IMG/VR virus record: IMGVR_UViG_3300029984_000001
Coordinates: 62,001-126,000 of that record
Strand: one strand, 5' to 3'
DNA: 64,000 nt
Shown here: positions 2,252-61,197 of the stretch, piece by piece
How the letters are laid out: every line of letters begins with the position of its first letter
Position numbering within the stretch: the stretch's first letter is position 1
Program-made: the position numbers and the translations under genes
The notes under the pieces: generated by a model
The model's input: the letters and a program-made list of their open reading frames with translations, nothing else
Database searches by the model: none
What the model was told of the DNA's origin: nothing

Positions 2252-3579
2252 AAATGTGTTGGGACTTCACTATAGTAATATAGTGTCGAATAACTCTCTT
2301 AATTGCTGGGAAGTTCACAAAAGTCTATAAACCATAATCTAATAGAGAAATGGTTACGAAAGTAGAAACAATATATAGACCTGTTCTAAGCTGAAATAAA
2401 AGCTTTAGGGAATCTAAAGTGCTAAGGAATATTAACAAGGAATAATCAGCAGGAATAATTAAAATATTAATTTAGAAATGTGTGTAATAAAATAATAACT
2501 AAAAGAGGTGATAAAATTTGAATCAATTTATGTATAGAGTACCACCATTAATAGAAGAATGGAGAAGAGTATCAGATTATATTCCTTATGTAAAACCATA
2601 TTATTTAGTGAGTAATTACGGGAAGGTTTATAGTGAATTTAGTATGTGTAATATGAATTTGACTAATGTGGGTAGAGGATATGAAAAAATAAAATTAGCA
2701 TGTATAAACGGATTCCAAGATTTTCTTATTCATAGATTAGTAATGATGTGTTTCAATCCAATAGAAAACCCTGAATCATATCAAGTAAATCATATGCTTG
2801 GTATAAAAACAATTAATGAAACATGTGTTCTAGAATGGTGTAATAATAGTGAGAATGGTTTACATTCATATAGAATGGGGTTAAGAAAACAAGGAGAAGA
2901 ACATGATTGGGCTAAATTGGATAACAATACAGTACATAAAATATGTCAAGCTTTACAAGAGAGAATGAACTATAAAGATGTATGTAATTTTGCTGGAATA
3001 GGTTATGATGAAAAGATGAAAGATATTATATCTTCAATTAAAAATAAGAAAATATGGAAATCTATATCATGTCTATATAATATTCCAGAATCCAGTAGAA
3101 ATGATCAACTATTCTCTGATAATGAAGCACATACTATATGCAAGTATATGGAAACTAATATGAATAATAAGGAAATATTAAAAAACATGGGATTTGATAT
3201 AAACAATCAAGATAAAAATAAGAAGGGAAGTTTATATAGAACTTTAAATAGAATAAGAAGTAAAGATAGATACACACACATTTCTAAAGATTATAATTTT
3301 TAATTATTCTTCAACGACTATCGAAAGCTATATACTAAGACAATATTCTTAGTTGAAAATAAGGTATGTATTAATAGTATATACACGAAGCAAGTAGAGT
3401 AGAGCCTAAGTTATTGAGGTGGAGGTTTTCAGTAATAATGATATAATCCCTCCTTAAATCGAACAAGGGAGTTGCCTATATATTTTGATATAGGTAAATT
3501 ATATAGTCTAGTATCCTACTTAACAGTAGGGAAGTTTATAAAGGAACTGTACTATTTAACGAATAGTATGAATGTAACG
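2252..3579 (+). mobile_element. group I intron (phage IA2-like) in RNAP beta' gene
   Basis: Exon ends in U (cct) pairing with IGS gggacttc; P aattgctgggaa, Q aatcagcagg, R tcaacgacta, S atatagtct; terminal G at 3579; splicing restores NRNP|TIAYGSI. Confidence 0.9.
2518..3303 (+). CDS. intron-encoded HNH homing endonuclease (NUMOD4/HNH-type)
   Basis: YLVSNYGKVYS, HRLVM, VNHMLGIKTIN...LEWC..SEN; lies in the P6 loop of the intron. Confidence 0.85.
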   Translation: MNQFMYRVPPLIEEWRRVSDYIPYVKPYYLVSNYGKVYSEFSMCNMNLTNVGRGYEKIKLACINGFQDFLIHRLVMMCFNPIENPESYQVNHMLGIKTINETCVLEWCNNSENGLHSYRMGLRKQGEEHDWAKLDNNTVHKICQALQERMNYKDVCNFAGIGYDEKMKDIISSIKNKKIWKSISCLYNIPESSRNDQLFSDNEAHTICKYMETNMNNKEILKNMGFDINNQDKNKKGSLYRTLNRIRSKDRYTHISKDYNF

Positions 3580-3918
3580 ACCATAGCATATGGAAGTATA
3601 CTTTATAGTAAAGTAATAGATATTTCGTTCGATTACTCATTACAAATCCCATTAGGTATATTAGGCTTATTAGCGGCAGACTTCGATGGTGATGTATTGA
3701 ATGTTTTATTGATTATCAATGAAGAATTCAGAGTACAAGCAGAAAGAATATTAAGTGCAAGAAACGCAATGTTCATTTCAAAGAATGATGGTAAACTTGC
3801 ATCGAATATGATAGCAAATAAAGATACTACTATAAATATAAATAGTTTAATATCTATGTCTAGAACTAACTACACCCAAGATCAAATAGACCAAATAAAC
3901 AGATTAAAAGCAATGTAG
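3580..3918 (+). CDS. RNA polymerase beta' N-terminal subunit, exon 2
   Basis: Catalytic ADFDGD motif; spliced product 389+112 = 501 aa. Confidence 0.9.
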   Translation, partial: TIAYGSILYSKVIDISFDYSLQIPLGILGLLAADFDGDVLNVLLIINEEFRVQAERILSARNAMFISKNDGKLASNMIANKDTTININSLISMSRTNYTQDQIDQINRLKAM

Positions 3919-3921
3919 TAA

Positions 3922-3946
3922 ATAGAGAGGAATAATTCCTCTCTAT
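3922..3946 (+). terminator. stem-loop terminator
   Basis: ATAGAGAGGAA-taa-TTCCTCTCTAT. Confidence 0.6.
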
Positions 3947-3974
3947 AATTTTAAAGAAAGAAGGTAATAAATAA

Positions 3975-4805
3975 ATGAAACAATTTATGACTTGAGATCC
4001 AGAAATAGAAAAGACTCACCCAAGAATAGGAGAATCTAATACCAGTACCAATAATACTTATATGCAAATAAATAGATATAAAAATTGTGATAATATTGGA
4101 GTGAAAATGATATCCATATTACCCAACGATGATATCAAATATTTTCAAAAAGAAAAATGTAAATACGAACACTTTAGAGATGGTGCTGTAAAATATCCTT
4201 ATGATAAATCTGTTGTAAGTATTGGTTATTTAGGAGAAGGTATATATAATCCGCAAAATCAACCTAGAGCTTATAATATATGGAAACACATGTTAACTAG
4301 ATGCGATTTCTCCTACAATACAAAAAGACCTACATATGAAACATCAATTCCAGATCCATATTTTCAATCTTTTCAAAATTTTGCAGAATGGTATAACTGT
4401 AATTATTATGAATTCCCAAATGAAAGAATGGACTTAGATAAAGATATTCTTTGTAAGAGAAACAAAATATATCATCCTAATTTATGTATATTTGTACCTC
4501 AATATATAAATACACTTGTAATAGGATGTGATAGTAAAAGAGGAGAGCTTCCTATAGGAGTTCAATTTGATAAAGGTAATTCAATCAATTCTTACATTAC
4601 TAAAGTAAGTGTAAATGGTGTTCAGAAATACTTAGGTTCTTATCCAACTCCAGAAGAAGCTTTTAATGTTTATAAAATTGCTAAAGAAGAAGAGATTAAA
4701 AGAATTGCTAATCTTTATTGGTTTGAAAAAGGTGGTAAAGACATTCCACAATTCGAGAAAGTTTATTTAGCTTTATTAGGTTATCAAGTAGAAATTACAG
4801 ATTAA
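3975..4805 (+). pseudogene. free-standing homing endonuclease-like gene (HNH-variant + AP2-like C-terminus) with in-frame TGA at codon 7
   Basis: ATG 3975 MKQFMT*DPEIEKTHPRIGE is in frame with ORF 4062 and aligns to the N-terminus of paralog 57594; DLDKDIL..NKIY.P..C.FVP and LGSYPTPEEAF motifs. Confidence 0.7.
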
Positions 4806-4825
4806 ATAATAGGAGGAAATTATAT

Positions 4826-5020
4826 ATGGATGCTATGTCAGTAAGAAAAGGGACAATTTTATTTAAACCTAAAACTGATTTTAAAATCAGATATGTTATT
4901 ATAGATTATGATACTAATTATATTTATTGTATAGATCTAAATGGAAAAAATAAAAATATAAGACCTGTAATCAAATTCTCATATACAGAATGTGATGAAA
5001 AAGGTTTAATCAAAGAATAA
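4826..5020 (+). CDS. hypothetical protein
   Basis: 64 aa ORF with AGGAGG RBS. Confidence 0.65.
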   Translation: MDAMSVRKGTILFKPKTDFKIRYVIIDYDTNYIYCIDLNGKNKNIRPVIKFSYTECDEKGLIKE

Positions 5021-5038
5021 AAATAGGGGGTATTAAAT

Positions 5039-5686
5039 ATGGATCACAAAACAAAAAGAGTTAATATAAATGGAGAGTTAGTTGATATAGATAATAATAT
5101 AGTAGAGTTAGTTTTACTATTAAATAATCATACAGACTTAAAAACACAATATTCTTGTGAGAATCTAAATGAGTCTGGTAGAATTCAAATAATGTTACGA
5201 CCTTCTGTAACAGATAGACAAGTATATGATTTCTTTAAAGAACATTCATGGTTACTTAAACATTGTGAAATAGTTAAGAGATTAAAGAGATATGATAGAA
5301 ATAATAATCTTGTAATGCAATGGATTATGTATATAGATTTATCTAACTATAATTTATTATTAGATAGAATGTATATTGCTCTTACTGATAAAATATTTTA
5401 TTACAATGCTTTTGTATATGATTATTCAGAAAATCCAATAGAGACTAAAATGGTTATTGGGTTGGGTTTAGATTATGAACAAAAAGAATATAATAGAGAA
5501 GAATTATTAAATGATATTATATCTAAACTCGATCTACAAGGTTATAAAGATAAAATTTGGATTGTTAAAATGAATAAATTATATTATGTCAGATTTAATG
5601 ATAAATGGTTTAATTCTAGTACTTTAAAAAATATGACAGAATTTATTAAAGATAATAGAAAGATATATTTAAAAGTAATTAAATAA
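5039..5686 (+). CDS. hypothetical protein
   Basis: 215 aa ORF with RBS; N-terminal D..I..LV..LN....T.YSC motif common in phage proteins. Confidence 0.7.
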   Translation: MDHKTKRVNINGELVDIDNNIVELVLLLNNHTDLKTQYSCENLNESGRIQIMLRPSVTDRQVYDFFKEHSWLLKHCEIVKRLKRYDRNNNLVMQWIMYIDLSNYNLLLDRMYIALTDKIFYYNAFVYDYSENPIETKMVIGLGLDYEQKEYNREELLNDIISKLDLQGYKDKIWIVKMNKLYYVRFNDKWFNSSTLKNMTEFIKDNRKIYLKVIK

Positions 5687-5704
5687 TATAATAGGGGTTT
5701 ATAA

Positions 5705-6048: not shown

Positions 6049-6064
6049 TAGGGAGTGTGTTATA

Positions 6065-6760: not shown

Positions 6761-6764
6761 GGAG

Positions 6765-7247: not shown

Positions 7248-7261
7248 AGGAGATATATGAT

Positions 7262-7825: not shown

Positions 7826-7864
7826 AACTAAAAGGGATATTAATCCCTTTTATTTTTTATGAAA

Positions 7865-7876
7865 AACATTAGAATA
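7865..7876 (+). promoter_or_regulatory. AR9-type late promoter AACA-N6-TA
   Basis: AACAttagaaTA directly upstream of 7888. Confidence 0.65.
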
Positions 7877-7887
7877 ATAGAAAGGAA

Positions 7888-17993: not shown

Positions 17994-18734
17994 TTATTTG
18001 TTATGATAACTAGATAAATCTCTCCTCATTAATCCAACCTTTCCTATAGTCATATCGTATAATCTATTATAACAAACATCCTCATTTTGAATATATTCAG
18101 ATTGTCCTAAATAATTAAAGTATACCACAGGTTCAAAATATGATATTACTGAATACATTTCATTCTTTATCATAACAGTAACTTTTCTTTTTTCTAAATC
18201 TATAGACTTAATATATCCAATCTCTTTACTCATATCTATAGTCATTGTTTTTTCAATATTATATGAATTATCATAAGGAAATTCTATTTTAAACATGTTT
18301 GTTTGTAATAATTCTTTAATCCTTGGATTGTCTAAACTTTTTTCTAACTCTTCTTTAGATAATAATCTATAATTTCTATCTATAACAGGTTTCCATGCTA
18401 AATCCAATTCTAATTCTTGATATCTTTTATTGATACTATTTAAATGTGATAATATTTCTTTAGCTTTTAAATTTATAACCTCACCAGTCACTGGTAATCC
18501 ATTAAATTCTATTGAAATTTCCTTAGTATCTTTATTATCTATATTAATTTCAAAAGATTCAACTGTAACTTTATTGTTTGGAATTGGAAACTCATATTTC
18601 ATTTTAGGACACTCCTCTTTTATAATTTTTATAATATCTTCTACTGCCTTTTTATTATTATTATCCCCGCAATTTGAAAAATCATATATAATATCAGATG
18701 ATGTTTCTTTTGAAATCTCTTTATCGTTCTCCAT
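17994..18734 (-). CDS. hypothetical protein
   Basis: 246 aa ORF, RBS GGAGG. Confidence 0.7.
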   Translation of the reverse strand: MENDKEISKETSSDIIYDFSNCGDNNNKKAVEDIIKIIKEECPKMKYEFPIPNNKVTVESFEINIDNKDTKEISIEFNGLPVTGEVINLKAKEILSHLNSINKRYQELELDLAWKPVIDRNYRLLSKEELEKSLDNPRIKELLQTNMFKIEFPYDNSYNIEKTMTIDMSKEIGYIKSIDLEKRKVTVMIKNEMYSVISYFEPVVYFNYLGQSEYIQNEDVCYNRLYDMTIGKVGLMRRDLSSYHNK

Positions 18735-19759: not shown

Positions 19760-20180
19760 TAATATATTTCTCCTCATATAATTTAATAATAGTTTTACAT
19801 ATTTTTTCAAATATTTCTTTATTATTTTCGTTTAAATATTTCACTTTATAACTACATCTAGGACCAGAACAAAATTCTAAAATAAATGTAATATTTTGAT
19901 TTGTTATAATAGCTTGTTCTGTAATTCCTATAGGAATAGTACTATTGTAATGAGATGGTATGGGTGCAGGCACAACATTTGATTTTACAAGCCATTTCTC
20001 ATTATCTACAAATATCTCTTTAAATATTGTATTGTCATCCCCATAATTATATAATGAGAATATAATAAAATTTAATGTCATAACATCGAAATCTTCTGGA
20101 TTATCTTCAGTTTTATACTCTTTATAAAAATATTCTGTTAGTCCTAATATTGTATTATATGTATTTTTATCTATACTCAT
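19749..20180 (-). CDS. hypothetical protein
   Basis: ORF track, RBS AAGGAG. Confidence 0.7.
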   Translation of the reverse strand: MSIDKNTYNTILGLTEYFYKEYKTEDNPEDFDVMTLNFIIFSLYNYGDDNTIFKEIFVDNEKWLVKSNVVPAPIPSHYNSTIPIGITEQAIITNQNITFILEFCSGPRCSYKVKYLNENNKEIFEKICKTIIKLYEEKYINDK

Positions 20181-30141: not shown

Positions 30142-31344
30142 TTGAAAGAGTTTATGAGAAGAGTTTCTTTAGAAGAAGAGATATATGATATGAATAGATA
30201 TAATATAAATACTAGACCTATTTTACGTGAAATACATACCGCTGATGTTCATTTTGGTGCATTAGATCCAAAAATACAATATGATATACTAGAAGAACAA
30301 TTTCTTAATAAATTAGAAGAAATAGAATTCGATGTATTATCTATAAATGGAGATTTATTCAATCGAAAAGGAATGACTAATTCGCCTATAACTTCATACG
30401 CTGCAATGTATGTGGCTAGATGTGTAAATATATGTAAAAAGAAAAGTAATAATCCTACAATGGTTATAATAGATGGTACAGATTCTCATGATGCAGGTCA
30501 ATTATCTTTATTTTATCATTATTTAAAAGATCCAGATATAGATATGAGAATAGTTACCAAAGTACAATTTGAATATATTAAAGGTGCTAAGATACTCTGT
30601 ATACCAGAGATGTATAATATGGGAGAAGATTATTATAATCATTTTTTAAAACATAGTGGATTATATGACGGAGTATTCATGCATGGTATGATTAAAGGAG
30701 CAGTTCATCAAGATGGAAGTGAAGGTATCAACTCATATAAAGCTCCGACATTCAGTATAAATGATTTTAATAACTGTTTAGGACCTATTATATGTGGACA
30801 TGTACATATTCCAGGATGTTTTAATAGGTATATTTATTATACAGGTTCCCCATTAAGATATGCTCATGGACAAGAAGAAGAAAAAGGTTTTATATTCTTA
30901 TTACATAATCTGAATGACCAATCTCATTATGTCCATTTTGAACCTATAAAGTCTTTTATATATGAGACTATTTTTTTAGATGATATTATTAATTCTGACC
31001 CTAAAGTTATATCTGACTTTATATGGCAATTAAAAAGTAAGGGTGTAGATAATTTAAGAATTAAATTCAATAAACCTTTGTCTGAAAATGGACTTAATAA
31101 TCTGGGAATTCTGAAAACATATTTTAGAAATATAAATTATATAAAATTTGATTATAATAATAAAGAAAAAATAGAAGAACAAAAAATGATTAATGAATTA
31201 AATGATAAATTCTCTGAATATGATTTTATATTTGATGATAATTTATCTGCTGAACAGCAATTTGTAATGTATGTAAATCATAAAGAAAAAAGTGAGTTTA
31301 TTACTGTAGATGAATTTAAACAGATCTTAAATGATGAATATTGA
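30142..31344 (+). CDS. SbcD/Mre11-like metallophosphoesterase nuclease
   Basis: HTADVHFG, NGDLFN, GTDSHD, MHG, CGHVH, YTGSP motifs; TTG start after GAGGTG. Confidence 0.88.
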   Translation: MKEFMRRVSLEEEIYDMNRYNINTRPILREIHTADVHFGALDPKIQYDILEEQFLNKLEEIEFDVLSINGDLFNRKGMTNSPITSYAAMYVARCVNICKKKSNNPTMVIIDGTDSHDAGQLSLFYHYLKDPDIDMRIVTKVQFEYIKGAKILCIPEMYNMGEDYYNHFLKHSGLYDGVFMHGMIKGAVHQDGSEGINSYKAPTFSINDFNNCLGPIICGHVHIPGCFNRYIYYTGSPLRYAHGQEEEKGFIFLLHNLNDQSHYVHFEPIKSFIYETIFLDDIINSDPKVISDFIWQLKSKGVDNLRIKFNKPLSENGLNNLGILKTYFRNINYIKFDYNNKEKIEEQKMINELNDKFSEYDFIFDDNLSAEQQFVMYVNHKEKSEFITVDEFKQILNDEY

Positions 31345-31453: not shown

Positions 31454-33235
31454 ATGAATGTTGCTAGACGACAAAAATTTATGAATAATGGAAGTAGAAC
31501 TGTATCTTTTTCTGATAAGAAAGTAGAAATAGTTTTTGATATAGGAATGCTTGATTTAATGTGTTCTTATGTTTTATCTGAAAATAGAACTATTAAAAAG
31601 AGTCAATTAATAAATATGAGAAATCTGTTTGAATGTATAGATTTAGAATTATATAGAACAGATATAGAAAAAAAGAAAAGAATAGATTTTATAAGAAAAG
31701 GATTAGAGGGAAGAATACTAAGAAATCTAAAAGAATATACATTAATATTGCAATATATTAATGGTGGTTTTCTAGATACAAATAATTTAGATGTAGATAT
31801 AACATCTGCTACTATTTTAAACTCTGACGAGATGCATTTTATAAATGAAACTGTATCCTCAGCATTAAAATATACCTTTATATATAACGATGTAGATAGA
31901 ATGTATAGTGTATTAACAAGATTTAAAGCTGCTGATTATGTATCAAAACAATATATGGTAAATGAACTTGAGGGAATTATTGCTGATATGCAAAATAAAT
32001 TCAGACGAGTTAGAGCTGACTCTACAAATGAATTGGAATTTAGATTAAAACCAGAAATATTAGAAGATTCTTTTAGAGATATTTATGATAAGTTAACAAA
32101 TCCATCTTCTAAATTAGTAACAGGATGGCAAGGTTTTAATGAAATGCTTGGTGGAGGTTTCTTTGGAACTAGACTTTACATGTTATTAGGGCTAACAGGA
32201 GGAGGAAAATCTTTAACACTATTGGATATATGTCTTCAATTAAAGAAATATAATAAGAATTTCAAATGTAAAGATCCATCTAAAAAACCTTGTATTGTGT
32301 ATCTTACAATGGAGAATACAGTTGAAGAGACTGTAGAAAGATTATTCGAAATGTCAACAGGAAGAGAAATTCAAGGATTATCATTTGAAGAGGCTTTACA
32401 TTTACTTGTAACAGATGGAGAGTTATATTTATCAGACGAATCTCCAATAGATATAATAATAAGATATAAAGCTAATAAATCTGTTGATACTGGATATTTA
32501 TATGAGATGACTGAAGATTTAGAAGATGAAGGAATGGAAGTAATTGCAGTAGTTCAAGATCATATTGGAAGAATGAGATCTACTCAAAATCTTACAGAAA
32601 CTAGATTAGAATTAGGAACTGTAGCAAATGAAATGAAAACATTCTCTCAATTAAAAGAAATTCCATTTATCACAAATTTCCATCTGAATAGAGAAGCAGC
32701 CGCAAAAATAGATGAGGCTACTAATTGTAATAAATCAGATTTAATTAGAGTATTAGGTAGAGCTAATGTTGCAGAATCTCAAGTTATGATTAATAATATA
32801 GATGGTTGTTATATGATAAATCAAGAATGGGATCAAAATGGTAATAAATGGTTAGGTGTAATGAGAACAAAGAAAAGGTTTAAAGCGAGTGATAGAGCTG
32901 TTATATTCATGCCATATACATCTCCTAATTCCCCTAAACTATTAGAAGATTATTATGCTACAATACCAGTATTTAGAGATTCACTTAGAGAAAATGTTAT
33001 TGGATACAACCAACCACAAAAGAAATCTAATAATAAAATACAACCAAATCCTTATAATGGAAATATAAGATCTATTGACGAGGTAATAGGTTCACAAAAT
33101 AAATTTGTAGATACAAGAACAGAAATAAACATATTCGATATAGAAAAATTAGCAGATTCATCTTGTGGACATAGAGCTGATTTGGTTAAAGATATAATAC
33201 CATTGAAAAAATTTATGACAAGAGTACCTGCATAG
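31454..33235 (+). CDS. DnaB-like replicative helicase
   Basis: TGWQGFNEMLGGGF, Walker A GLTGGGKS, YLTMEN, VQDHI, HLNR; AACA-N6-TA at 31414-31425. Confidence 0.88.
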   Translation: MNVARRQKFMNNGSRTVSFSDKKVEIVFDIGMLDLMCSYVLSENRTIKKSQLINMRNLFECIDLELYRTDIEKKKRIDFIRKGLEGRILRNLKEYTLILQYINGGFLDTNNLDVDITSATILNSDEMHFINETVSSALKYTFIYNDVDRMYSVLTRFKAADYVSKQYMVNELEGIIADMQNKFRRVRADSTNELEFRLKPEILEDSFRDIYDKLTNPSSKLVTGWQGFNEMLGGGFFGTRLYMLLGLTGGGKSLTLLDICLQLKKYNKNFKCKDPSKKPCIVYLTMENTVEETVERLFEMSTGREIQGLSFEEALHLLVTDGELYLSDESPIDIIIRYKANKSVDTGYLYEMTEDLEDEGMEVIAVVQDHIGRMRSTQNLTETRLELGTVANEMKTFSQLKEIPFITNFHLNREAAAKIDEATNCNKSDLIRVLGRANVAESQVMINNIDGCYMINQEWDQNGNKWLGVMRTKKRFKASDRAVIFMPYTSPNSPKLLEDYYATIPVFRDSLRENVIGYNQPQKKSNNKIQPNPYNGNIRSIDEVIGSQNKFVDTRTEINIFDIEKLADSSCGHRADLVKDIIPLKKFMTRVPA

Positions 33236-36682: not shown

Positions 36683-37054
36683 ATGAACAATTTTATGAAG
36701 AGAGACGAAATAATTAATGAGGATTTATTAAAAGAGGGGTTAATCAACCCAGATGCTTTACTCAACAAAAAAGAGAAATCTTATATGATACTATACTTTG
36801 CGACAGAACCAGTATCAAAAGAAGAAGAAAAAAGCTGGCATGTTGCTGTAGGAAGAGAAGAAGCATATAATTTTATCAAAGGAATGATAAGTTGTATAGA
36901 TTTAGAATCAACGAAAGTAGTTGTAGGAGGAACGACATATGAAGATGCTAAAAATGCCTATCAATTCATGAAATACATATCACAGTTCATGAATGATCCA
37001 ACGTTTAATATCGACGAATACTATACTCCAGATGAAGATGAGAAAGGAGAATAA
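36683..37054 (+). CDS. hypothetical acidic protein
   Basis: Start at MNNFMKR after GAAAGG; TATATTATA at 36632. Confidence 0.7.
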   Translation: MNNFMKRDEIINEDLLKEGLINPDALLNKKEKSYMILYFATEPVSKEEEKSWHVAVGREEAYNFIKGMISCIDLESTKVVVGGTTYEDAKNAYQFMKYISQFMNDPTFNIDEYYTPDEDEKGE

Positions 37055-40649: not shown

Positions 40650-41802
40650 AAAATGTGTGTCCCTTCTCTATAGTAATATAGAGTCGAATAACCTATTAAA
40701 TGCTGGAAAGTCCACAAAAGTTCATAAACCATTATTATAATAAGAAATGGTTACGAAAGTAGAAACAATATATGAACCTGACATATGCTGAAATAAAAGC
40801 TTTAGTTGAGATTCTAAAGTGCTAAGTGTTATTGACAAGGGATTCTCAGCAGTAAAATAATTTGCTTAAATAAAATAATTAATAAAAAGGAGGTGAAAAA
40901 TATGAATGTTTTTATGCAACGATGTTTTGATTATTTTCCTATAAATATATCAAATCCTACTATAGAAATAGTTAGATATCCAGAGATGTGGAAACCTTTG
41001 AATATAATTGGAATAAAATATAATACATATAATATTAGCACAAAAGGTAGAATCTATTCAATACCAAAACAGAGATTATTAAATCCTCAATGTAATTCTG
41101 ATGGATATATGAAAATAAAATTATTAACAAATATTGAATCAAGAGAAGAGTTCAGTTTACATAGATTAGTTTTAATGACATTCTTTCCAATTTTCTATAT
41201 GAATGAATTAGAAGTGAATCATATAAATGGTAAAAAAGATGATAATGATATTGCAAACTTAGAATGGTGTAGTAGATCTCAAAATATACATCATAGTTAT
41301 TTACTTGGGTCTAGAAGTCAAATTGGTGTAAATAATGGTAATGCTAAATTTAATGAAAATGATGTAAGAAGAATATGTGAATATAGACAACAAGGATTAG
41401 TTGCAAGTCAAATATGTAAAGCTATGGATTTGGATTGTGAACCTAATAAGAGACATAGACGAGTAGAAAATATATTATTCGGAGTTACATGGAAACATAT
41501 ATCATCGCAATATGGAATATAAGTTTAAGCAACTTATTTTATTCAACGACTATCGAAAGCTATATACTAAGACAATATTCTTAGTTGAAAATAAGGTATA
41601 TATTAACAATATATACACGAAGCAAGTAGAGTAGAGCCAAGTGGTAGAACCGTTCCGTAATAAGGATATAAGAGTTCTTTAAATCGAAGTGATAGGTTGC
41701 CTATATATGATATAGGTAAATGATATAGTCTTAACACCTACTTAACAGTAGGGAAGTTCATAAGAGAACTGTATTATCTAACGAATAGTATGAAAACAAT
41801 TG
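40650..41802 (+). mobile_element. group I intron in gyrB
   Basis: Exon ends ggaU pairing IGS gtcc; P/Q/R/S elements near-identical to intron 1; terminal G 41802; splicing restores IIIMSD|ADKDGDHI. Confidence 0.9.
40902..41522 (+). CDS. intron-encoded HNH homing endonuclease
   Basis: HRLVL, VNHINGKKDDN...NLEWCSRSQN; in the P6 loop. Confidence 0.88.
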   Translation: MNVFMQRCFDYFPINISNPTIEIVRYPEMWKPLNIIGIKYNTYNISTKGRIYSIPKQRLLNPQCNSDGYMKIKLLTNIESREEFSLHRLVLMTFFPIFYMNELEVNHINGKKDDNDIANLEWCSRSQNIHHSYLLGSRSQIGVNNGNAKFNENDVRRICEYRQQGLVASQICKAMDLDCEPNKRHRRVENILFGVTWKHISSQYGI

Positions 41803-48630: not shown

Positions 48631-49398
48631 ATGAATAAGAAACTTTTTATAGTTTACAATATAATTTTAATATCATTAATAATATTTACAGGAGTAGTTT
48701 TACATAAAAATGAAGAATTAAAAACTACTAATACACAATTAGTAGTAAAATCATGGGAAACAGATAAACAGCTAAGTCAAGTTAAAAATGAAATGAATGC
48801 TTATAAAACATTATACACTTCTCAAGAAGGTGATATAAAAGATTATATAGTTTTATATAAGAAAACTAAAACAGAATTAGATAACCTAAAATCACAAATT
48901 TACATATCTAAAGAAAAAGAGAAAAATGCTTCTAGAGGTGATTACATAAATAAAAATCTTAGTGATTATGCAATAATGACTGTAGATGAGATGAACGAAT
49001 GGATAGCAAAGAGAGCACCTAAAGGTAGTCCTTTTATTGGAAAAGGAGAAGTATTTTTAAAGACAGGAGCTGCTAATAAGATAGACCCTAAGCTAATAGT
49101 AGCATTAGCTGGAAATGAATCTGGATGGGGGATGTCTAAATTAGCTAGAGATAAAGGTAATTATTTTAGTATTACCGCATATAATGATAATCCTTATACC
49201 TCAGCAAAAGCATTCAATGGGGATTTTCAAACAAACATATCAGATGGTGTTGCATGGATAAAGAGTAATTTTTATGATAAAGGGAAAACTTCTTTAGCCC
49301 AAATGCAATCTGAAAATAATAAAGCTTATGCCCAAAATAATGATGGTAGTCCTAATAAAGAATGGACTTCTGTTATTTGTAATATAGTTTACCATTAA
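48631..49398 (+). CDS. membrane-anchored N-acetylglucosaminidase (GH73-like peptidoglycan hydrolase)
   Basis: N-terminal TM, coiled coil, ASRG linker, ALAGNESGWG.S.LA..K.N.F.I.AY. Confidence 0.8.
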   Translation: MNKKLFIVYNIILISLIIFTGVVLHKNEELKTTNTQLVVKSWETDKQLSQVKNEMNAYKTLYTSQEGDIKDYIVLYKKTKTELDNLKSQIYISKEKEKNASRGDYINKNLSDYAIMTVDEMNEWIAKRAPKGSPFIGKGEVFLKTGAANKIDPKLIVALAGNESGWGMSKLARDKGNYFSITAYNDNPYTSAKAFNGDFQTNISDGVAWIKSNFYDKGKTSLAQMQSENNKAYAQNNDGSPNKEWTSVICNIVYH

Positions 49399-49442: not shown

Positions 49443-50633
49443 ATGGAAAATTTAAGAAGATTAAACGTTCAATTAATAGGTATAGGTGGAGCAGGAAATA
49501 AAGGTACAATTAATGTTGTAGAAAAAGGTGTACTAGAAAAAGATGATATATTCTTAATCAATTCAACAATGAGAGATGTAGCTCCAGATTATAAAGATAT
49601 AGCATATATCTATGATACTGTAGGTGGTTCTGGTAAAGATATGAAATTTGCTGAATCTTTAGCAAAAAAAGAATTAGAAAGAGGAACTTTGGGTCAACAA
49701 TTAAATGAATGGGTAAAACCAGATACAGATATTGTAGTCATTACAGGAAGTACAGAAGGTGGTACTAATGCTGGTTCTATTTCAGTAATTACTGATTTCA
49801 TATATGATGAATTAGATATTCCAGTGGTTAATATATTATTAACAGGATTTATGAAAGATGCAAGAGGAGTTAAAAATACAATAGATGTATTCAAGAAACT
49901 TAGAATAAAAGAAATAGGTGTCCAAACTATATCCAGTTCAAAGTGTCTAGAAGGTAAAGATATAGTTAAAGCACAACAACACGCTAATGATGAATTAGCT
50001 CAAAGAATATCTATATTAATAACTAAAGGTATTGTTGATAGTGATGATAATATAGATAATACTGACTTATATAATACAGCAGCATTCCCTGGATATATGA
50101 CTATAGAACATATTCCATTACCAAAATTAAAAGATATGAATGCTTTTAATGAAACTTTAAATACAATGATAAATGGTTCTAAGTCGTTAGATATAGATCC
50201 AGAAGAAGATAAAAAGAAAGTTGGTAAAAGAGCAGTATTTATAAACTTAAAAGATGAAAAAGAAAAAATGTTTGTAGATTTTGAATTTGAATCTTTAAAA
50301 GAATATTATGGTGAACCTTATGATAAATTTGATCATATTCAATTTGAAAAAGATCAAGAAAGTTATATATCAGTAATACTTACAGGTATGAATATGCCAT
50401 TGGCTGAATTAATAGATATGGAAAATAAATATAAAATGTTAAATTCTTCTGTAAATAAAGAGGTAGATACATTCGATGAAGTTGTTGCTGATATGAAAAG
50501 TGATGTAGATGATGGTATGTTTGACATAGGTAGAAAAAGAAGAAGACCTAAAGAGAATGTTTCGGGTCCAGAACATATGAAAAAATATGGAGTTAAACAA
50601 GAAGAAAAAGCTAAAGATGATATTTATAAATAA
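49443..50633 (+). CDS. tubulin/FtsZ-family GTPase (TubZ/PhuZ-like)
   Basis: GIGGAGNK, GGSGKD, signature variant EGGTNAG, T7 loop NIDNTD. Confidence 0.85.
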   Translation: MENLRRLNVQLIGIGGAGNKGTINVVEKGVLEKDDIFLINSTMRDVAPDYKDIAYIYDTVGGSGKDMKFAESLAKKELERGTLGQQLNEWVKPDTDIVVITGSTEGGTNAGSISVITDFIYDELDIPVVNILLTGFMKDARGVKNTIDVFKKLRIKEIGVQTISSSKCLEGKDIVKAQQHANDELAQRISILITKGIVDSDDNIDNTDLYNTAAFPGYMTIEHIPLPKLKDMNAFNETLNTMINGSKSLDIDPEEDKKKVGKRAVFINLKDEKEKMFVDFEFESLKEYYGEPYDKFDHIQFEKDQESYISVILTGMNMPLAELIDMENKYKMLNSSVNKEVDTFDEVVADMKSDVDDGMFDIGRKRRRPKENVSGPEHMKKYGVKQEEKAKDDIYK

Positions 50634-55375: not shown

Positions 55376-57544
55376 TTGAACAATGTATTAGAGATTAATA
55401 GAAATATTGTAGAAATTATAGAGAAAGAAAAAACTAGAATACCTAATATGGAAAGATTATTAGGATATTCTGCAAATATGCCATCGAACTCTGCTAACAG
55501 TGGATCTCGTCGCTTATTAATGGTTTCACAAGCATCACAAAGACTTGAGGTTTATAATTCTCAAAGACCTCTTTTATCTACTGGATCAGAAAATCAGATA
55601 GGACATTATTCTTCAGAATTTGTTAAGACTGAAGATGAATTGAAAGTAATCGCTAGAGTAGAAAAATATAGATTTGTACCTGGACATAATTATTTTCTAT
55701 TAGTACAGAATACTAGAACAGGGGAATTTGATTTTATACAAAGGATAGGACATAGTCATAATACAGAATCTTACGGATTCTTGTATAACAATACATATAT
55801 AGATAAAGTAAAACCAGGATACACAATACCAAAAGGAGTTCCAATTAAAAAATCTACTTCATATGATGATAATAATAATAGGGAGGATGGAGTTAATCTC
55901 GACGTTACTTATATAACTAATGAAGAAACAAAAGAGGATTCTATTGAAATATCAGATTATGGTGCTGAATTATTATCTGCCCCTTTAATAGAAAATTTCT
56001 CTACTTTCTTAAGTGAAAATGAAATACCTGTAAATACATATGGGAATGATACAGTATATAAAGCTATTCCAGATATAGGAGAAAAAATAGCTAATGGTAT
56101 AGTTATGGTTACTAGAGTTGAAAAGAAGAATGAAATAATGTTTGCACAGTCAACCGAAAATTTGAAAAAGATATTTATAGGAGATACTAGATTTTCTTTA
56201 AAAGGTGAAGTAGTAGATATAAATATATATTGTAATAATCCTGAATTTTTAAATACTAATCCTAATTATGCTCAGTTTAAATATTACTATGATCAACAAA
56301 TGGATTTTGCAAAAGAAATGGTAGACGCGATTGAAACATATACAGATGTAAAGAGACATTCTTATCAATTAGAAAAATTACATTATAGATTAAAACAACA
56401 ACTAGAAGAAGTTCCGTTCTCTAAAGATAAAAGTTTTAGTAATATTCTAATTGAAATTACTGCTGTAGAAATGAATCCTTTAAGAGTTGGTGATAAGATC
56501 ACAAATAGATATGGTGGTAAAGGAGTTATATCTGAAATAAGACCAAGACATATGATGCCATATACTATTGTCAATGGAGAGAAAATTTATGCAGATATAA
56601 TTTATAATTCTAATACATGTGTTAATAGAGTTAACCCTGGACAACTATTTGAGATGTCTATAAACTTCATTGGTCAAAATATAACTTCTAGAATAAATGC
56701 AGGCGATAATATAAATTCTCTAATGGAAATGTACTATAATTTTATAAGAATAGTCGCACCAGACATGTATAAATTTGTTAGAGAGAAATTTAAAGTAGAT
56801 GAATTAGGTTCAATGGTACAAATATTAGAATCTATTAAAAGAGATGGTGGAATTAATGTATCACAAAAACCTATAACAGAAGTAATGACAGTAGATAAAT
56901 TGAAAGAATTGTATGATGTATTACCTTGGATAGAACAGTATAAAGTAATTGTCCCTCAAGTAAACAGTAATGGGGATATTAGATACATTTACGCTAGAAG
57001 AAGAATGGTAATATCAAAACAATACATGTATAGATTAAAACAGTATGCAGAAGAGAAATTCTCTGTTACTTCTTTATCTACCACTAATATCAGAAATGAA
57101 AATAGTAAGAACTCTTTGAAGAAGAACCATAAATCTCCTTACTCAAAAACCCCTACTCGCTTCACCTCGGAGATGGAGGTTCATGACATGATTCATTTAG
57201 GTGCAGAGAATGTTATTACAATATTAATGATACATTCAGCATCTCCAGCTGCACGGCGTCTTTGTGAACAGTTGTTAACAGGAGATCCGTTTAAAGTTGA
57301 TATAAGATTAGATGAAAATTGTAGAAACCGTTCAGTGGAGATAGTTAATACATATTTAAGAACCATAGGATTGAAATTGAACTTTAAGAAAATTCCTAGG
57401 GTTAAAACACAATTTATGACTAGAAGTATAGATTTTATGGAAAGATGTAAAGAGGATGAAAAGTTAACATTTATGCATCGTGATTCATTTGATACCAAAA
57501 GAAAATTTTGTCATAGAGGTAGAAGTAAATTAAAAAGAGATTAA
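55376..57544 (+). CDS. non-virion RNA polymerase beta C-terminal subunit
   Basis: NSGSRRLLMVSQASQ, GVNL, EDSI, GDKITNRYGGKGVIS, RVNPGQLFE, YMYRLKQ, EMEV. Confidence 0.92.
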   Translation: MNNVLEINRNIVEIIEKEKTRIPNMERLLGYSANMPSNSANSGSRRLLMVSQASQRLEVYNSQRPLLSTGSENQIGHYSSEFVKTEDELKVIARVEKYRFVPGHNYFLLVQNTRTGEFDFIQRIGHSHNTESYGFLYNNTYIDKVKPGYTIPKGVPIKKSTSYDDNNNREDGVNLDVTYITNEETKEDSIEISDYGAELLSAPLIENFSTFLSENEIPVNTYGNDTVYKAIPDIGEKIANGIVMVTRVEKKNEIMFAQSTENLKKIFIGDTRFSLKGEVVDINIYCNNPEFLNTNPNYAQFKYYYDQQMDFAKEMVDAIETYTDVKRHSYQLEKLHYRLKQQLEEVPFSKDKSFSNILIEITAVEMNPLRVGDKITNRYGGKGVISEIRPRHMMPYTIVNGEKIYADIIYNSNTCVNRVNPGQLFEMSINFIGQNITSRINAGDNINSLMEMYYNFIRIVAPDMYKFVREKFKVDELGSMVQILESIKRDGGINVSQKPITEVMTVDKLKELYDVLPWIEQYKVIVPQVNSNGDIRYIYARRRMVISKQYMYRLKQYAEEKFSVTSLSTTNIRNENSKNSLKKNHKSPYSKTPTRFTSEMEVHDMIHLGAENVITILMIHSASPAARRLCEQLLTGDPFKVDIRLDENCRNRSVEIVNTYLRTIGLKLNFKKIPRVKTQFMTRSIDFMERCKEDEKLTFMHRDSFDTKRKFCHRGRSKLKRD

Positions 57545-57593
57545 ATATTAGATAGGATTAATCTCCTATCTAATACAAAAAAGAGGTGATAAA

Positions 57594-58448
57594 ATGGAAA
57601 TGAAAAAATTCATGACTAGAGATGAAAAGATTAATCCAGATTTATTATTGAGATATCCACGTATAGGTGAGACTAGTATAAATAAAAGAGGAAGTACATT
57701 AGAAATAGTAGATTATAGAAAATGGGATCAAGTAGATGTAATGGTAATAACTAGATTAGAATCTGGTGAATTCAAATATTATAGATCAAATAATTGTGAA
57801 TATAGTTGTTTCATCAAAGGTTCAATAGGATCACCTTTTGACAAATCTACTTGTGGTGTTGGATATATGGGAATTGGGTCTTATTCATCTATCACACACC
57901 CAAAACTTCATATGTTTTGGAGTGGTATGTTATTTAGAGGATATAATGATAAGTATTATGGAAATAATACTTATATGGATGTAACAGTAGATTTTAGATT
58001 TCATAATTTTCAATATTTTGCAGAGTGGGCTGAACAGAACTATTATGAAATCAATGGAGAAAGAATGACCTTGGATAAAGATGTATTATTTAAAGGTAAT
58101 AAAATATACAGTCCAGAAACTTGTTGTTTTCTCCCTAATAACCTAAATGTAATGTTTACAAAAAGACAAATCGATAGAGGAGAATTACCAATAGGTGTAA
58201 CACGTAAGGATGATTGTACACAAAATCCTTATAGAGTTTCTATGTCTGTGGATGGGAAGGGTGCTGTTCATATTGGGACATTTCCAACTCCAGAAAAAGC
58301 ATTCATTGCTTATAAAGAAGCAAAGGAAGAAGAGATAGAAAAACAAGCAAATATATACTTGAATGAGAAAGGCGGACAATTTATTCCACAGTTTAGAGAC
58401 ATTGTTTATCCAGCTTTATTACGTTATAAAGTCGAGATTACAGATTAA
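57594..58448 (+). CDS. free-standing homing endonuclease-like protein (HNH-variant + AP2-like)
   Basis: Paralog of 3975; LDKDVL.K.NKIYSPETCCFLP..LN, HIGTFPTPEKAF..YK.AKE. Confidence 0.75.
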   Translation: MEMKKFMTRDEKINPDLLLRYPRIGETSINKRGSTLEIVDYRKWDQVDVMVITRLESGEFKYYRSNNCEYSCFIKGSIGSPFDKSTCGVGYMGIGSYSSITHPKLHMFWSGMLFRGYNDKYYGNNTYMDVTVDFRFHNFQYFAEWAEQNYYEINGERMTLDKDVLFKGNKIYSPETCCFLPNNLNVMFTKRQIDRGELPIGVTRKDDCTQNPYRVSMSVDGKGAVHIGTFPTPEKAFIAYKEAKEEEIEKQANIYLNEKGGQFIPQFRDIVYPALLRYKVEITD

Positions 58449-58466
58449 AAGGAAAGAAGGTTTAAT

Positions 58467-58856
58467 ATGGATAATATAAATACTAAATTTACTACTTGTG
58501 TTTTTATGAAAGTGTTTACTCCTACTGAAGAATTAGTAAAAGTAGAAAGAGCTATTTCTAAATCAATTATAAGAGAAGAAGGTACTGATTATTTTCATGT
58601 AACAACTAAAAATACTATAATAATAAAACATTTAACTTCTATGTATAATGGGATTAAAAGTGGTGATCCTTTTCGGGTAAAGACTTATTTAGGTTTAATA
58701 GAATCTAACCAACTACTAGCTAATTTTGCAAATGAAAATTGTTACGTTGAAATAAATGAAATTAAACATATATTACAAATTAAATCAATAGAAAAATTAG
58801 AGGAGGGTCATGTAAAAGTAACATTCATTCTTGCTGGTTTTAAAATTAAATTTTAA
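58467..58856 (+). CDS. hypothetical protein
   Basis: ORF track. Confidence 0.65.
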   Translation: MDNINTKFTTCVFMKVFTPTEELVKVERAISKSIIREEGTDYFHVTTKNTIIIKHLTSMYNGIKSGDPFRVKTYLGLIESNQLLANFANENCYVEINEIKHILQIKSIEKLEEGHVKVTFILAGFKIKF

Positions 58857-58896
58857 ATAGATTATATATTATAAATATGAAGAAAGGAGGTTTAAT

Positions 58897-61197
58897 ATGG
58901 ACGAGAATTTAAAATTAATCTTTGATAATTTAATGAAAGGGATTCTTCCTACTGATGATGATAAATTGTTTGTTAATACCTATATAAAAAATATATTAGA
59001 TACAGTGAATTTATCGGAGAGACAAATAGAAGATTCTAAAATAGTATTACAAATTTGTAATACTATTTTTAGTTGTACAGATTTAAAGTTTGTTAATAGT
59101 CAGGTATGGGATTTATTGATGGAGAGGTATAAAATATACCATCCAGATAATTTTCAAGTAGGAAGTTTTGATATTGATTTTAAATCAACAATTAAACAAC
59201 AAAATCAGGAGTCAAAAGAAAATATGAAAGTCTTTATGGTGCGTCTTGACAAGACTCAGGAAGATAAAATGTTGTTCAAAGAAGAATTAGCAAGTTCTTC
59301 GTATAAAGCACCTGAAGAGACCTATTACAAAACATTTATGAAACGTGAAGGTGCTTATATTAATAAAAGGAATACGAATACTCCTCATAATTATCAAAAA
59401 CTTGTTGGTACTTTAGATAAAGTAAAGTTTGTATTAAATCAACAAGCAATAGAAAAAGGTGTATTTACTGATTCTAATGTAAAAGTATTAGAAAGGGATT
59501 TCTTTGGTGTTCATATACAACAAGGAATATTAAATCCTAAAAGAATAATAAGAATATTGTTAGAGTTGAAAATTGATGGTGTATCTGCTGAATGTGATGT
59601 AGGAACATGTGTTGATAGTGGACGTTCAAGAGGAGATATGGAATCGGATAAAGCTACAGATCTAACACCAATATTAAAAGGATATAGATTTCCAAATGCT
59701 CCTATATCTTTATATAAAGAACCAAGATTTGGAATGAAGTTTGAAGCTATAATTACTAAACCTGACTTAAATACTTTCAATTATATTAAGAATTATTCTT
59801 ATAAGAATTGTAGAACAGGCATAATAGGATTATTCTCTGGTTCAGATGCATATCAACATCAAAACCTGATTACTCTAGTACCTTTAGCAACATCATTAGA
59901 AGGTGTATTTAAAGATAGAGTAGAAGAGATTGAATTTTTAAATATGTGTTATGCTACTAAAGTTCCTTTAAAGTATGCTGTTATAGAAGGAGACTTAACA
60001 ACTATTCTATTCCAAGTAAAAAGATTCGTTGAAGAAGCAGAAGCTATGAGACCTTATATGGGATACATGTATGATGGAGTGGTATTATCTTATTTGGATC
60101 AAGATATAATAGATAAACTACCTAGATCTAATTACATAAATAAACATACTATAGCTATTAAATTTAATCCAGAGAAAGCTCAAACTACAATTAGAGCTTT
60201 AACTATAACTGTTGGACAAGATGGAGTTATAACTCCTATGATTCATTATGATATAATTAGCTTTATGGGAACTACTCATACCAAATCATCTATACACTCT
60301 TATGAAAGATATAAACAATTAGGTTTCAGATACGGTAATATTGGAGATGCAGAGTATGTAAATGATGTAATGCCATATGTTACTAAACCTGATAATCATT
60401 TTAATGCTGAGATAGATAAAGCTAATGAACCTATACCTTTTCCTACACATTGTCCAGAATGTCAAACTAAACTTATAGAATCTAAATCTGGAAAGAATAT
60501 GATATGTGATAATATCGGATGTAAAGGTAGAGCTTTAAGTAGAGTAGTAAATATGATGAAAAAATTAAATTTAAAAGATTTTGCTGAAGCTGCTTTTGAA
60601 AAAATCAAGATATATTCTTTAACTGAATTATTGAATCTCAGATATGAAGATGTATTAAAGTTTGGTCTAGGAGAAGTGAACTCTCAAAAGTTTATGGATC
60701 GAATGAATTCTATTAAAACAGAACCTATATATGATTATGAAATTCTAGGGTCTTTAGGTATTGATAATATGGGAAGAGGTAAATGGAAATTGATCTTGAA
60801 TAAATATACATTACAAGAAGTAATGTCTATGCCAGAAACTTTTAGATATTCTGCTATCGCTGAGATAAAAGGATTAGGTCCCGAAACAGCTCGTACTCTT
60901 AATGATAGAATGGAATTCTTTATGGAGGATTTGATTACTGTAGGATGTTTAAAGAATATAGTAATATCAAAAGGGGTTACTTTACCTAAAGTAAGAATGA
61001 CTGGATTTAGGGATGCTGAACTTATTGAGAAAGCTAAGAAACTTGGTTTTGATATAGGTGAAGGTTCAGTCACTAAAGATACAAATGTATTATTAGTACC
61101 AACACTAAGTCATGAAAGTCCTAAAGTTACAAAAGCAAAAAATGATGGTATACTTATTATGAGTAAACAAGATTTTATAAACCAATATAATTTATAA
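58897..61197 (+). CDS. ligA: NAD-dependent DNA ligase
   Basis: ELKIDG, SRGD, DGVV, AIKF, VGQDGVITP, CPEC..C....C Zn finger, HhH, BRCT (RMTGFRD...SVTKDT). Confidence 0.9.
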   Translation: MDENLKLIFDNLMKGILPTDDDKLFVNTYIKNILDTVNLSERQIEDSKIVLQICNTIFSCTDLKFVNSQVWDLLMERYKIYHPDNFQVGSFDIDFKSTIKQQNQESKENMKVFMVRLDKTQEDKMLFKEELASSSYKAPEETYYKTFMKREGAYINKRNTNTPHNYQKLVGTLDKVKFVLNQQAIEKGVFTDSNVKVLERDFFGVHIQQGILNPKRIIRILLELKIDGVSAECDVGTCVDSGRSRGDMESDKATDLTPILKGYRFPNAPISLYKEPRFGMKFEAIITKPDLNTFNYIKNYSYKNCRTGIIGLFSGSDAYQHQNLITLVPLATSLEGVFKDRVEEIEFLNMCYATKVPLKYAVIEGDLTTILFQVKRFVEEAEAMRPYMGYMYDGVVLSYLDQDIIDKLPRSNYINKHTIAIKFNPEKAQTTIRALTITVGQDGVITPMIHYDIISFMGTTHTKSSIHSYERYKQLGFRYGNIGDAEYVNDVMPYVTKPDNHFNAEIDKANEPIPFPTHCPECQTKLIESKSGKNMICDNIGCKGRALSRVVNMMKKLNLKDFAEAAFEKIKIYSLTELLNLRYEDVLKFGLGEVNSQKFMDRMNSIKTEPIYDYEILGSLGIDNMGRGKWKLILNKYTLQEVMSMPETFRYSAIAEIKGLGPETARTLNDRMEFFMEDLITVGCLKNIVISKGVTLPKVRMTGFRDAELIEKAKKLGFDIGEGSVTKDTNVLLVPTLSHESPKVTKAKNDGILIMSKQDFINQYNL

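Follow-up and report, generated by a model that had tools for sequence, protein, structure and literature searches.

The analysed window, a stretch of 64,000 nucleotides, belongs to an uncultured jumbo phage distantly related to AR9/PBS1 (IMG/VR contig 3300029984_000001) and contains a number of genes of DNA replication, recombination and transcription, as well as genes of homing endonucleases, whose products carry the short peptide FMxR. All occurrences of this peptide listed in the initial annotation were confirmed.

Four genes of endonucleases within the window, all on the plus strand, begin with the tag or its remnant. HNH endonuclease 1 (ORF 2518-3303, TTG start), located between the two pieces of a split RNAP beta-like gene, contains FMYR at residues 4-7 (2527..2538). 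HNH endonuclease 2 (40902-41522, HNH_3 plus NUMOD4), located between the two pieces of gyrB, contains FMQR at residues 4-7 (40911..40922), while the relative at 80% identity has an uninterrupted gyrB. The free-standing endonuclease 57594-58448, matching PHROG 953 and 374, annotated as HNH endonuclease, belongs to a family unrelated to HNH endonucleases 1 and 2 and contains FMTR near its N-terminus (57609..57620); translation probably starts at the second ATG. In a paralogue of this endonuclease, residues 4-7 (3984..3995) read FMT followed by TGA, an in-frame stop codon where the Arg codon should be; the conserved core is contained in the downstream ORF 4062-4805, and this is accordingly probably a decaying copy.

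The gene of the SbcD/Mre11-like nuclease (30142-31344, plus strand, TTG start) encodes FMRR at residues 4-7 (30151..30162), in an N-terminal extension that is absent from AR9 SbcD. The divergent DnaB-like helicase (31454-33235, plus strand) contains FMTR (33212..33223) 7 residues from the C-terminus. A 123-aa protein of unknown function (36683-37054, plus strand) contains FMKR at residues 4-7 (36692..36703), and its orthologues carry the local tag of their own genome. The nvRNAP beta C-terminal-half subunit (55376-57544, plus strand), an orthologue of AR9 gp088, has a C-terminal tail (57413..57517) that lies beyond the end of the AR9 protein and contains FMTR (57413), FMER (57434) and FMHR (57470), as well as a degenerate FCHR (57506).

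The NAD-dependent DNA ligase (58897-61197, plus strand) contains FMVR (59233) and FMKR (59335), located together at 59233..59346. The initial annotation placed nearly all copies at termini or in insertions outside conserved domains; these two copies are not at a terminus, but lie in an insertion of about 60 aa between domain Ia and the adenylation domain, which is absent from the AR9 ligase. Ligases of related phages carry the tag of their own genome at the same positions. A third copy, FMDR at ligase residue 599 (60691..60702, plus strand), has the lowest-scoring context and no counterpart in relatives, and may be due to chance. A possible degenerate tag, YMRR, with a weak score, was found at residues 11-14 (19769..19780, minus strand) of a Cas4-like nuclease (19022-19810), the orthologues of which in two genomes start with their own local tag (MKPFIY).

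Additional copies were found just outside the window on the same contig. The DNA polymerase piece (62712..64000, plus strand; 579 aa, PHROG 2943) runs off the window and contains FMMR at residue 521, about 270 bases beyond the window end; its orthologues carry the local tag in the same C-terminal region. The tag is also present in a 100-aa protein beginning MIEFMQRVP, a 251-aa protein ending KVFMKRDKE, and a third HNH endonuclease beginning MKTFMTR. All five endonuclease genes found in 86 kb of this genome start with the tag, one of them now broken.

In a greedy non-overlapping set of 65 ORFs (19,439 aa), 12 in-frame occurrences of FMxR were found, against 0.96 expected from residue frequencies. 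Among about 33,000 tri-residue patterns observed in six spacing layouts, FMxR is the single strongest outlier (Poisson p = 5e-10, against 1.5e-6 for the next), and therefore survives the post-hoc choice of motif. Only 2 clean hits (26334 and 11673) were found outside the coding frame across the other frames and the opposite strand, so the signal is frame-specific. A position-weight scan separated true tags (score 18-26) from everything else (14 or less), with no intermediate class. The N-terminal copies are located behind good ribosome-binding sites and share the register M-x-x-F-M-x-R. Some copies, however, are not independent: the 3975 and 57594 endonucleases are paralogues, and the first 16 residues of the 36683 protein match the N-terminus of the 57594 endonuclease at 11 positions. 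Phe is encoded by TTT or TTC and Arg by AGA, CGT or CGA, and synonymous codons differ among copies in six genomes, so selection acts on the peptide and not on the DNA.

FMxR is retained at the same sites in relatives of 66-80% identity, while the flanking residues change. Relatives at 76-80% identity retain it at the SbcD N-terminus, the helicase C-terminus and the small-protein N-terminus, and a relative at 66% has FMTR four times in the beta tail, and FMHR and FMRR in the ligase insertion. In more than 20 related genomes the same positions, namely, the SbcD N-terminus, the DnaB-like helicase C-terminus, the insertion in the NAD ligase, the DNA polymerase C-terminal region, the nvRNAP beta C-terminal tail with 3-5 tandem copies, and the N-termini of small proteins, carry a short hydrophobic tag that is uniform within a genome and different between genomes, for example, FMxR, IMxR, LFxR, NPFIH, KPFT, KAFS, PFEI, VVxF and AIxF. 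Thus, ELKTVYR was found in three proteins of the related genome L010, NPFIH in 8 proteins and 11 sites of the related genomes L022/L121, and LFxR in the related genome L186. Pairing of the SbcD N-terminus with the helicase C-terminus across 60 non-redundant loci was supported by a permutation test (p ≤ 1e-4). Tag models built only from beta tails scored the SbcD, helicase, ligase and polymerase regions of their own genome above the regions of other genomes (permutation p ≤5e-5, ≤5e-5, ≤5e-5 and 2.5e-4, respectively). In the 57594 endonuclease family, only the two copies residing in FMxR-type phages have the tag-bearing N-terminal extension.

The initial annotation had suggested a peptide-level linear motif on DNA-acting proteins, which binds one common partner and which mobile endonucleases must acquire; this inference is strongly supported by the co-variation, the conservation and the distribution of the tag among endonucleases. 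The description of the signal as phage-wide should be replaced by its presence on a discrete set of replication, recombination and transcription proteins; gyrase A and B, UvsX, the Dda-like helicase and SbcC carry no tag. FMxR, or more fully hydrophobic-[K/N]-x-F-M-x-R, often followed by acidic residues, is most likely (with a probability of roughly 0.55) a short linear docking motif, exposed at termini, in tails or in an insertion, which is inferred to tether DNA polymerase, replicative helicase, NAD ligase, SbcD, probably a Cas4-like nuclease, several small proteins and, through the beta tail, the non-virion RNA polymerase to one phage-encoded partner located on or at the replicating phage DNA. 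No published description of such a tag was found.

The partner was not identified: no clamp, clamp loader or SSB was recognised by Pfam or PHROGs in about 86 kb of this genome, and group 1 jumbo phages are reported to lack a classical clamp (PMC7824862). Two conserved proteins adjacent to the polymerase, both encoded on the plus strand and without homologues in cultured phages, are only candidate partners, and neither is a clamp fold. The 204-aa protein 61337..61951 is confidently predicted as two tandem helix-helix-sheet repeats, each partly resembling HU. For the protein of about 203 aa directly upstream of the DNA polymerase (62030..62692), an N-terminal small beta-barrel, read as SH3-like from the strand order alone, followed by a helical domain with weak helix-turn-helix matches, is predicted.

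Among the closest known systems are the sliding-clamp (gp45) binding tails of gp43, gp55 and gp33 in T4/RB69, in which a short hydrophobic peptide, often followed by acidic residues, is shared by the DNA polymerase C-terminus and the late transcription machinery, the tails being interchangeable in T4 (PMC2988020); T4 ligase also contacts the clamp, according to a reference cited in PMC7824862. In contrast, the sequence of the tag is unrelated, with Arg in this lineage at the position where other lineages have Phe; tags also occur at N-termini and internally, are present in 3-5 copies on a core RNA polymerase subunit and not on separate sigma-like factors, are carried additionally by the helicase, SbcD and homing endonucleases, and change between fairly close relatives. 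The bacterial beta-clamp-binding motif (QL[SD]LF) and the archaeal/eukaryotic PIP box are likewise motifs of 5-8 residues at termini or in loops of polymerases, ligase, repair nucleases and some helicases, and some related lineages have look-alike tags, such as QAIRF, PMVTF and PALLF. However, FMxR and most variants do not fit either consensus, and those motifs are conserved across phyla because the clamp pocket is conserved, whereas the tag is lineage-specific; a host clamp is therefore an unlikely partner. The rapid divergence of the tag fits an arms-race or gatekeeping role at least as well.

A less likely but possible alternative is an address signal, read by a phage-encoded gatekeeper of a replication compartment, whose rapid lineage-specific divergence keeps out the nucleases of competing phages and of the host. 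This is consistent with the presence of the tag or its remnant in every resident homing endonuclease, and multiple copies on the large RNA polymerase complex could aid its import. In nucleus-forming phages, PicA-dependent, species-specific import relies on a rapidly diverging recognition code that decides which proteins, including an intron-encoded endonuclease, reach phage DNA (PMC11087766; see also PMC11620839). A conserved 396-aa protein (49443-50633) has a glycine-rich loop, which by eye may be FtsZ/tubulin-like. On the other hand, the untagged gyrase A and B, UvsX, the Dda-like helicase and SbcC act on the same DNA, import into known phage nuclei uses folded surfaces with no linear signal found, chimallin, needed by that system, is absent from AR9-like phages (PMC13282480), and no compartment gene was identified here.

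It is unlikely that the tags bind one another by short strand pairing, with the multivalent RNA polymerase tail as the scaffold of a replication-transcription factory or condensate without a separate hub. The 3-5 copies in the beta tail have a recurrent 2-1-2 layout, the tags are short hydrophobic or aromatic segments, and uniformity within a genome is what self-recognition would demand; however, most clients carry one copy only, the flanking charged residues and prolines suit groove binding better than self-pairing, low-complexity context is absent, and a precedent for homotypic tags of 4-5 residues does not appear to be known. A degron or processing site, recognised by a phage or host protease adaptor that times the removal of early replication and transcription proteins, is still more doubtful: terminal location is typical of degrons, and AR9-type phages encode ATP-dependent protease-like proteins, but five copies on an essential late-acting RNA polymerase subunit and tags on every core replisome enzyme are hard to reconcile with destruction, and internal ligase copies and fast co-variation are not expected for host protease signals. 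An artefact of chance, of composition (the genome is 25% G+C, which favours Phe, Lys and Asn codons), of N-termini shared between some carriers, or of a DNA/RNA-level element such as a translational operator around the start codon is essentially excluded by the enrichment, by the frame specificity and codon variation, by the occurrence of the tag in unrelated protein families at N-terminal, C-terminal and internal sites, and by the unrelated tags of other genomes at the same sites.

In the docking interpretation, the binding groove of the partner and the tag co-evolve, so each phage lineage has its own tag, and homing endonucleases that settle in a genome gain the local tag and, with it, access to phage DNA. 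Functionally, this would correspond to the logic of the T4 sliding-clamp 'toolbelt', in which many DNA enzymes are tethered to one DNA-bound hub.

The window, positions 62,001-126,000 of the IMG/VR contig IMGVR_UViG_3300029984_000001 (263,571 bp), has a G+C content of 25%. It encodes pieces of multisubunit RNA polymerases, a divergent DnaB-like helicase (Pfam divDNAB), an SbcD-like nuclease, gyrase B and A, a UvsX-like recombinase, an NAD-dependent ligase, a piece of the divergent family B DNA polymerase (PHROG 2943), tail-fibre-like and virion proteins, and several homing endonucleases. An RlaP-like nucleotidyltransferase (35841-36611), a glucosaminidase-type endolysin (48631-49398) and, by Pfam, a Cas4-like nuclease (19022-19810) were also annotated. 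For the ORF at 17994-18734 no PHROG was found, and its Cas4 support is limited to a weak hit on a same-length gene at the corresponding place in L006, a relative of 80% identity. Split multisubunit RNAP genes, the divergent DnaB, the polymerase, the NAD ligase and an AR9-like gene order place the phage among the AR9/PBS1-like (group 1) jumbo phages; Pfam divDNApol was detected in a relative. The closest cultured relatives are Bacillus phages AR9 and PBS1, with 31% identity of the C-terminal half of nvRNAP beta to AR9 gp088, and the local gene order UvsX, beta, ligase is shared with AR9. Hundreds of closer, uncultured relatives are represented by contigs of 150-330 kb.

The initial annotation described a recurrent FMxR peptide on DNA-acting proteins, and all of its coordinates were confirmed. 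Twelve FMxR motifs lie in frame in 65 ORFs (19,439 aa), against 0.96 expected. Since the motif was chosen after inspection of the sequence, every tri-residue pattern in six spacing layouts was scored; FMxR is the top of about 33,000 patterns (p = 5e-10), the next being at 1.5e-6. Only two clean hits occur out of frame on either strand. A weight-matrix scan showed a clean gap between the tags (scores 18-26) and all other sites (14 or less), and no tags were found in gyrase A and B, UvsX, the Dda-like helicase, SbcC and the structural proteins. A small protein encoded at 33666-34019 (- strand) ends in the tag-like sequence KPLILRRI, and its orthologue in L011, one of the loci compared, ends in KPIILRRID, but this ending scores below the threshold.

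The N-terminal copies follow good ribosome-binding sites in a fixed register, M-x-x-F-M-x-R, and the second ATG as the true start was rejected on its spacing from the ribosome-binding site. Arg is encoded by AGA, CGT or CGA, and Phe by TTT or TTC. Synonymous codons differ among copies in all six genomes inspected, which excludes gene conversion or a nucleic-acid-level element. A promoter, translational operator or intron element was rejected because hits are frame-specific, synonymous codons vary, and no upstream DNA is shared beyond the ribosome-binding site. Reading 10 kb beyond each end of the window on the same contig added four more carriers, namely, the polymerase piece (FMMR at residue 521 of 579), a 100-aa protein (MIEFMQRVP), a 251-aa protein ending in KVFMKRDKE and a third HNH endonuclease (MKTFMTR).

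The decisive evidence is co-variation of the tag between genomes. SbcD homologues at 76-80% identity keep FMxR, while more distant ones have IMHR, IMRR, VYRQ and other forms at the same N-terminal position. Contigs of relatives showed that the change is coordinated within a genome. The 76-80% relatives keep FMxR at the SbcD N-terminus, the helicase C-terminus and the N-terminus of the orthologue of the protein encoded at 36683, while flanking residues differ; a 55% relative has ELKTVYR or LKTVFR at all three sites, and a 54% relative has IMRR and IMTR. In 80 loci anchored on SbcD, the SbcD N-terminus and the helicase C-terminus repeatedly share a peptide that differs from genome to genome, for example NPFIHI/NPFIHV, KQVMEFI/KQVMEFV, RQIYYF/RKIYYF and MIPALYF/MIPALLF (p ≤ 1e-4 on permuting the pairing across 60 non-redundant loci). 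Directly after the tag (window 30163-30210), SbcD keeps a segment S-x-E-E-x-I-Y-x-L-N across genomes with different tags, and the 36683 protein and the endonuclease encoded at 57594 share D-E-x-I-N-x-D-L-L after their tags; the docking element may include an acidic helix.

Among the 70 tails inspected of the 120 closest homologues of the nvRNAP beta subunit, nearly all carry a tail of 50-90 residues beyond the end of the AR9 protein, so the tail is not explained by intron read-through. Each tail holds 3-5 copies of a short motif peculiar to that sequence, such as FMTR four times, IMxR four times, LFxR four times, AMxR five times, KPLF or PIxF, often in a 2-1-2 layout. A shuffle test of repeats within single beta tails was only moderately powered (median z 2.6). 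Between the tag copies, many tails share a central acidic-aromatic element such as DEYFDPDY or EGFDYEKDF, and the tail may therefore be more than a string of tags. Linking of beta loci to SbcD loci by contig name in 29 genomes showed that the tail motif is the same peptide as on SbcD and the helicase. Scanning of both loci of each genome added the ligase insertion (residues about 110-155), the polymerase C-terminal region, small proteins and a Cas4-like nuclease as carriers. In an unbiased test, tag models built only from the beta tail scored the SbcD, helicase, ligase and polymerase regions of their own genome above those of other genomes (p ≤5e-5, ≤5e-5, ≤5e-5 and 2.5e-4, respectively), the polymerase orthologues carrying the tag of their own genome in the last 100 residues. 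Two more relatives fit the pattern: a 66% relative has FMTR four times in the tail, and FMHR and FMRR in the ligase insertion, and a 51% relative uses LFxR in the tail, the ligase and the polymerase.

The tags lie in add-on segments. Compared with AR9, SbcD has an N-terminal extension, beta has a longer tail, and the ligase has an insertion of about 60 aa that holds two tags. The ligase FMKR was therefore not taken for the conserved family motif F-x-x-R, since it lies in this insertion, absent from AR9, where relatives carry their own tag. The AR9 DnaB-like helicase (3583-5268 of the AR9 locus) ends differently, in EKDSGIPF, an ending that appears to resemble the C-terminal tail of bacterial SSB, and AR9 may use a different docking logic for its helicase. 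The tag system itself is absent from AR9, Staphylococcus phage PALS_2, Listeria phage LPJP1 and Bacillus phage AgentSmith, which have no repeat-bearing beta tail; the system therefore belongs to the uncultured clade.

Two unrelated families of mobile endonucleases carry the tag, PHROG 59/959 with HNH_3 and NUMOD4, and PHROG 953/374. Among 77 homologues of the 57594 endonuclease (N-termini were inspected for the closest ~60), the near-identical database copy (98%) carries the same extension, and otherwise only one 48% homologue has an N-terminal extension of 20-27 aa containing KKFMTRD, while all others inspected start directly at the conserved core. That homologue and a further paralogue lie in an FMxR-type relative, whose polymerase piece and another protein are also tagged. 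Homologues of the window's endonucleases in the loci examined were too few for a cross-genome test. All five endonuclease genes seen in 86 kb of this genome start with the tag, one of them broken. In this copy (3975-4805), which looks like a decaying paralogue of the 57594 endonuclease, TGA replaces the Arg codon at codon 7, inside the tag; the reading frame stays open for 23 further codons to the ATG at 4062, where the 247-aa ORF holding the conserved core begins. It is probably a recent pseudogene, or a tagless product started at 4062. Footprints of decayed endonuclease 5' ends do not explain the co-varying tags in genomes without those endonucleases.

Two genes, an RNAP beta-like gene (1085-2275 and 3472-3918; PHROG 2987, profile positions 47-382 and 382-474) and gyrB (39072-40673 and 41800-42654), are split by inserts of about 1.2 kb, each holding an HNH endonuclease ORF, while L006 has an uninterrupted 805-aa gyrB. 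No group I intron was found by Rfam around either intervening ORF, so the intron status assigned in the initial annotation is inferred only from the split genes.

A peptide kept uniform across unrelated proteins within a genome, yet replaced wholesale between genomes, is what a set of ligands for one co-evolving receptor looks like. The list of clients, including the polymerase C-terminus, ligase, Mre11-like and Cas4-like nucleases, helicase and RNA polymerase, resembles a sliding-clamp or replisome-hub interactome. The nearest precedent is the T4 system, in which gp43, gp55 and gp33 share an interchangeable clamp-binding tail (PMC2988020). Accordingly, the tag is most likely a docking motif for a phage-encoded, DNA-associated hub, with a probability of roughly 0.55. 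Multivalent binding of the RNA polymerase tail would couple late transcription, or priming in these primase-less phages (PMC7824862), to replication. As in clamp-binding motifs, a short hydrophobic peptide is shared by several DNA-transaction enzymes at termini or in exposed segments, and is present near the C-terminus of the DNA polymerase. However, the sequence fits neither QL[SD]LF nor QxxLxxFF nor the T4 hydrophobic-acidic C-terminal tail: FMxR has Arg at the anchor position, the variants NPFIH, KPFT, KAFS and LFxR do not fit either, and only a modest excess of acidic residues follows the tag (0.22 against 0.14 background).

The hub was not identified. Pfam and PHROGs searches of about 60 proteins, in about 86 kb of the genome with about 175 kb not seen, revealed no clamp or SSB, and group 1 jumbo phages are reported to lack a clamp (PMC7824862). 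The two conserved, clade-specific proteins of unknown function encoded between ligase and polymerase are predicted with high confidence to have non-clamp folds. The first (61337-61951, 204 aa, pLDDT 91) is predicted as two tandem helix-helix-sheet repeats, each partly matching HU (TM about 0.5 over 80 residues), and ends in a disordered acidic tail; it may be a single-chain HU-like phage chromatin protein, and no homologue was found in cultured phages. The second (62030-62692, about 203 aa, pLDDT 89), directly upstream of the DNA polymerase, is predicted as a small beta-barrel followed by a helical domain with weak helix-turn-helix matches, and may correspond to the small SH3-fold protein noted upstream of group 1 jumbo-phage polymerases (PMC7824862). 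Either could be the partner. A scan for columns acidic only in the three Arg-type genomes gave one column in the predicted HU-like protein (residue 31), which is Asp in all three, and one in the protein encoded from 49443, against none in about 3,900 control columns, but this is too weak to claim. The latter, a 396-aa protein conserved in the clade (49443-50633), has an N-terminal loop LIGIGGAGNKG that by eye resembles the nucleotide-binding loop of FtsZ/tubulin, although Pfam and PHROGs gave no hit.

Among the alternatives, an access or import code explains the endonucleases and the fast divergence well, but it does not explain why gyrase, UvsX and the Dda-like helicase lack the tag, and it is considered unlikely. 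No compartment genes are known for AR9-like phages, a review states that these phages lack chimallin, and the recognition element is linear here, unlike the cargo of the PicA pathway of chimalliviruses. In a more unusual and only tentative reading, the tag would be a lineage-specific address code controlling which proteins may reach the phage chromosome, read by a gatekeeper or chromatin-like hub, for example, the predicted tandem HU-like protein at 61337-61951. Such a code would diversify under conflict with co-infecting phages and host nucleases, homing endonucleases would have to copy it to spread, and the non-virion RNA polymerase would carry up to five copies because transcription, and perhaps priming, is coupled to the same hub. 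Terminal sorting signals (Sec/Tat-type, T4 capsid targeting sequence) occupy a fixed terminal position, usually the N-terminus, whereas the tags occur at N-termini, at C-termini, internally in the ligase and in tandem in the RNAP tail. Homotypic stickers are less likely than an access code, and a degron is more doubtful still. Chance, paralogy or a nucleic-acid element are essentially excluded.

The principle of a shared docking peptide for a hub is known, but full-text literature searches found no description of such a motif in jumbo phages, nor of clamp-type motifs on homing endonucleases. The phage group, which has no known clamp, the placement of tandem copies on a core RNA polymerase subunit, the inclusion of the replicative helicase, SbcD and every resident endonuclease seen among the clients, and the lineage-specific turnover of the tag are new.

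Group 1 jumbo phages have no recognised clamp, primase or replisome organiser, and a shared tag on polymerase, helicase, ligase, nucleases and RNA polymerase predicts that an organiser exists, for which the tag is a direct bait. Hundreds of related genomes with different tags provide a natural co-variation data set for locating the binding pocket and studying the co-evolution of motif and receptor, and the tag gives a sequence rule for calling DNA-associated proteins among the many unknown genes of these phages. Acquisition of the tag by homing endonucleases would be the first known sign that selfish nucleases adapt to the protein-docking code of a host phage. The multicopy tag on a core RNA polymerase subunit suggests a physical link between replication and late transcription, or priming, which would be a T4-like solution reached by different means.
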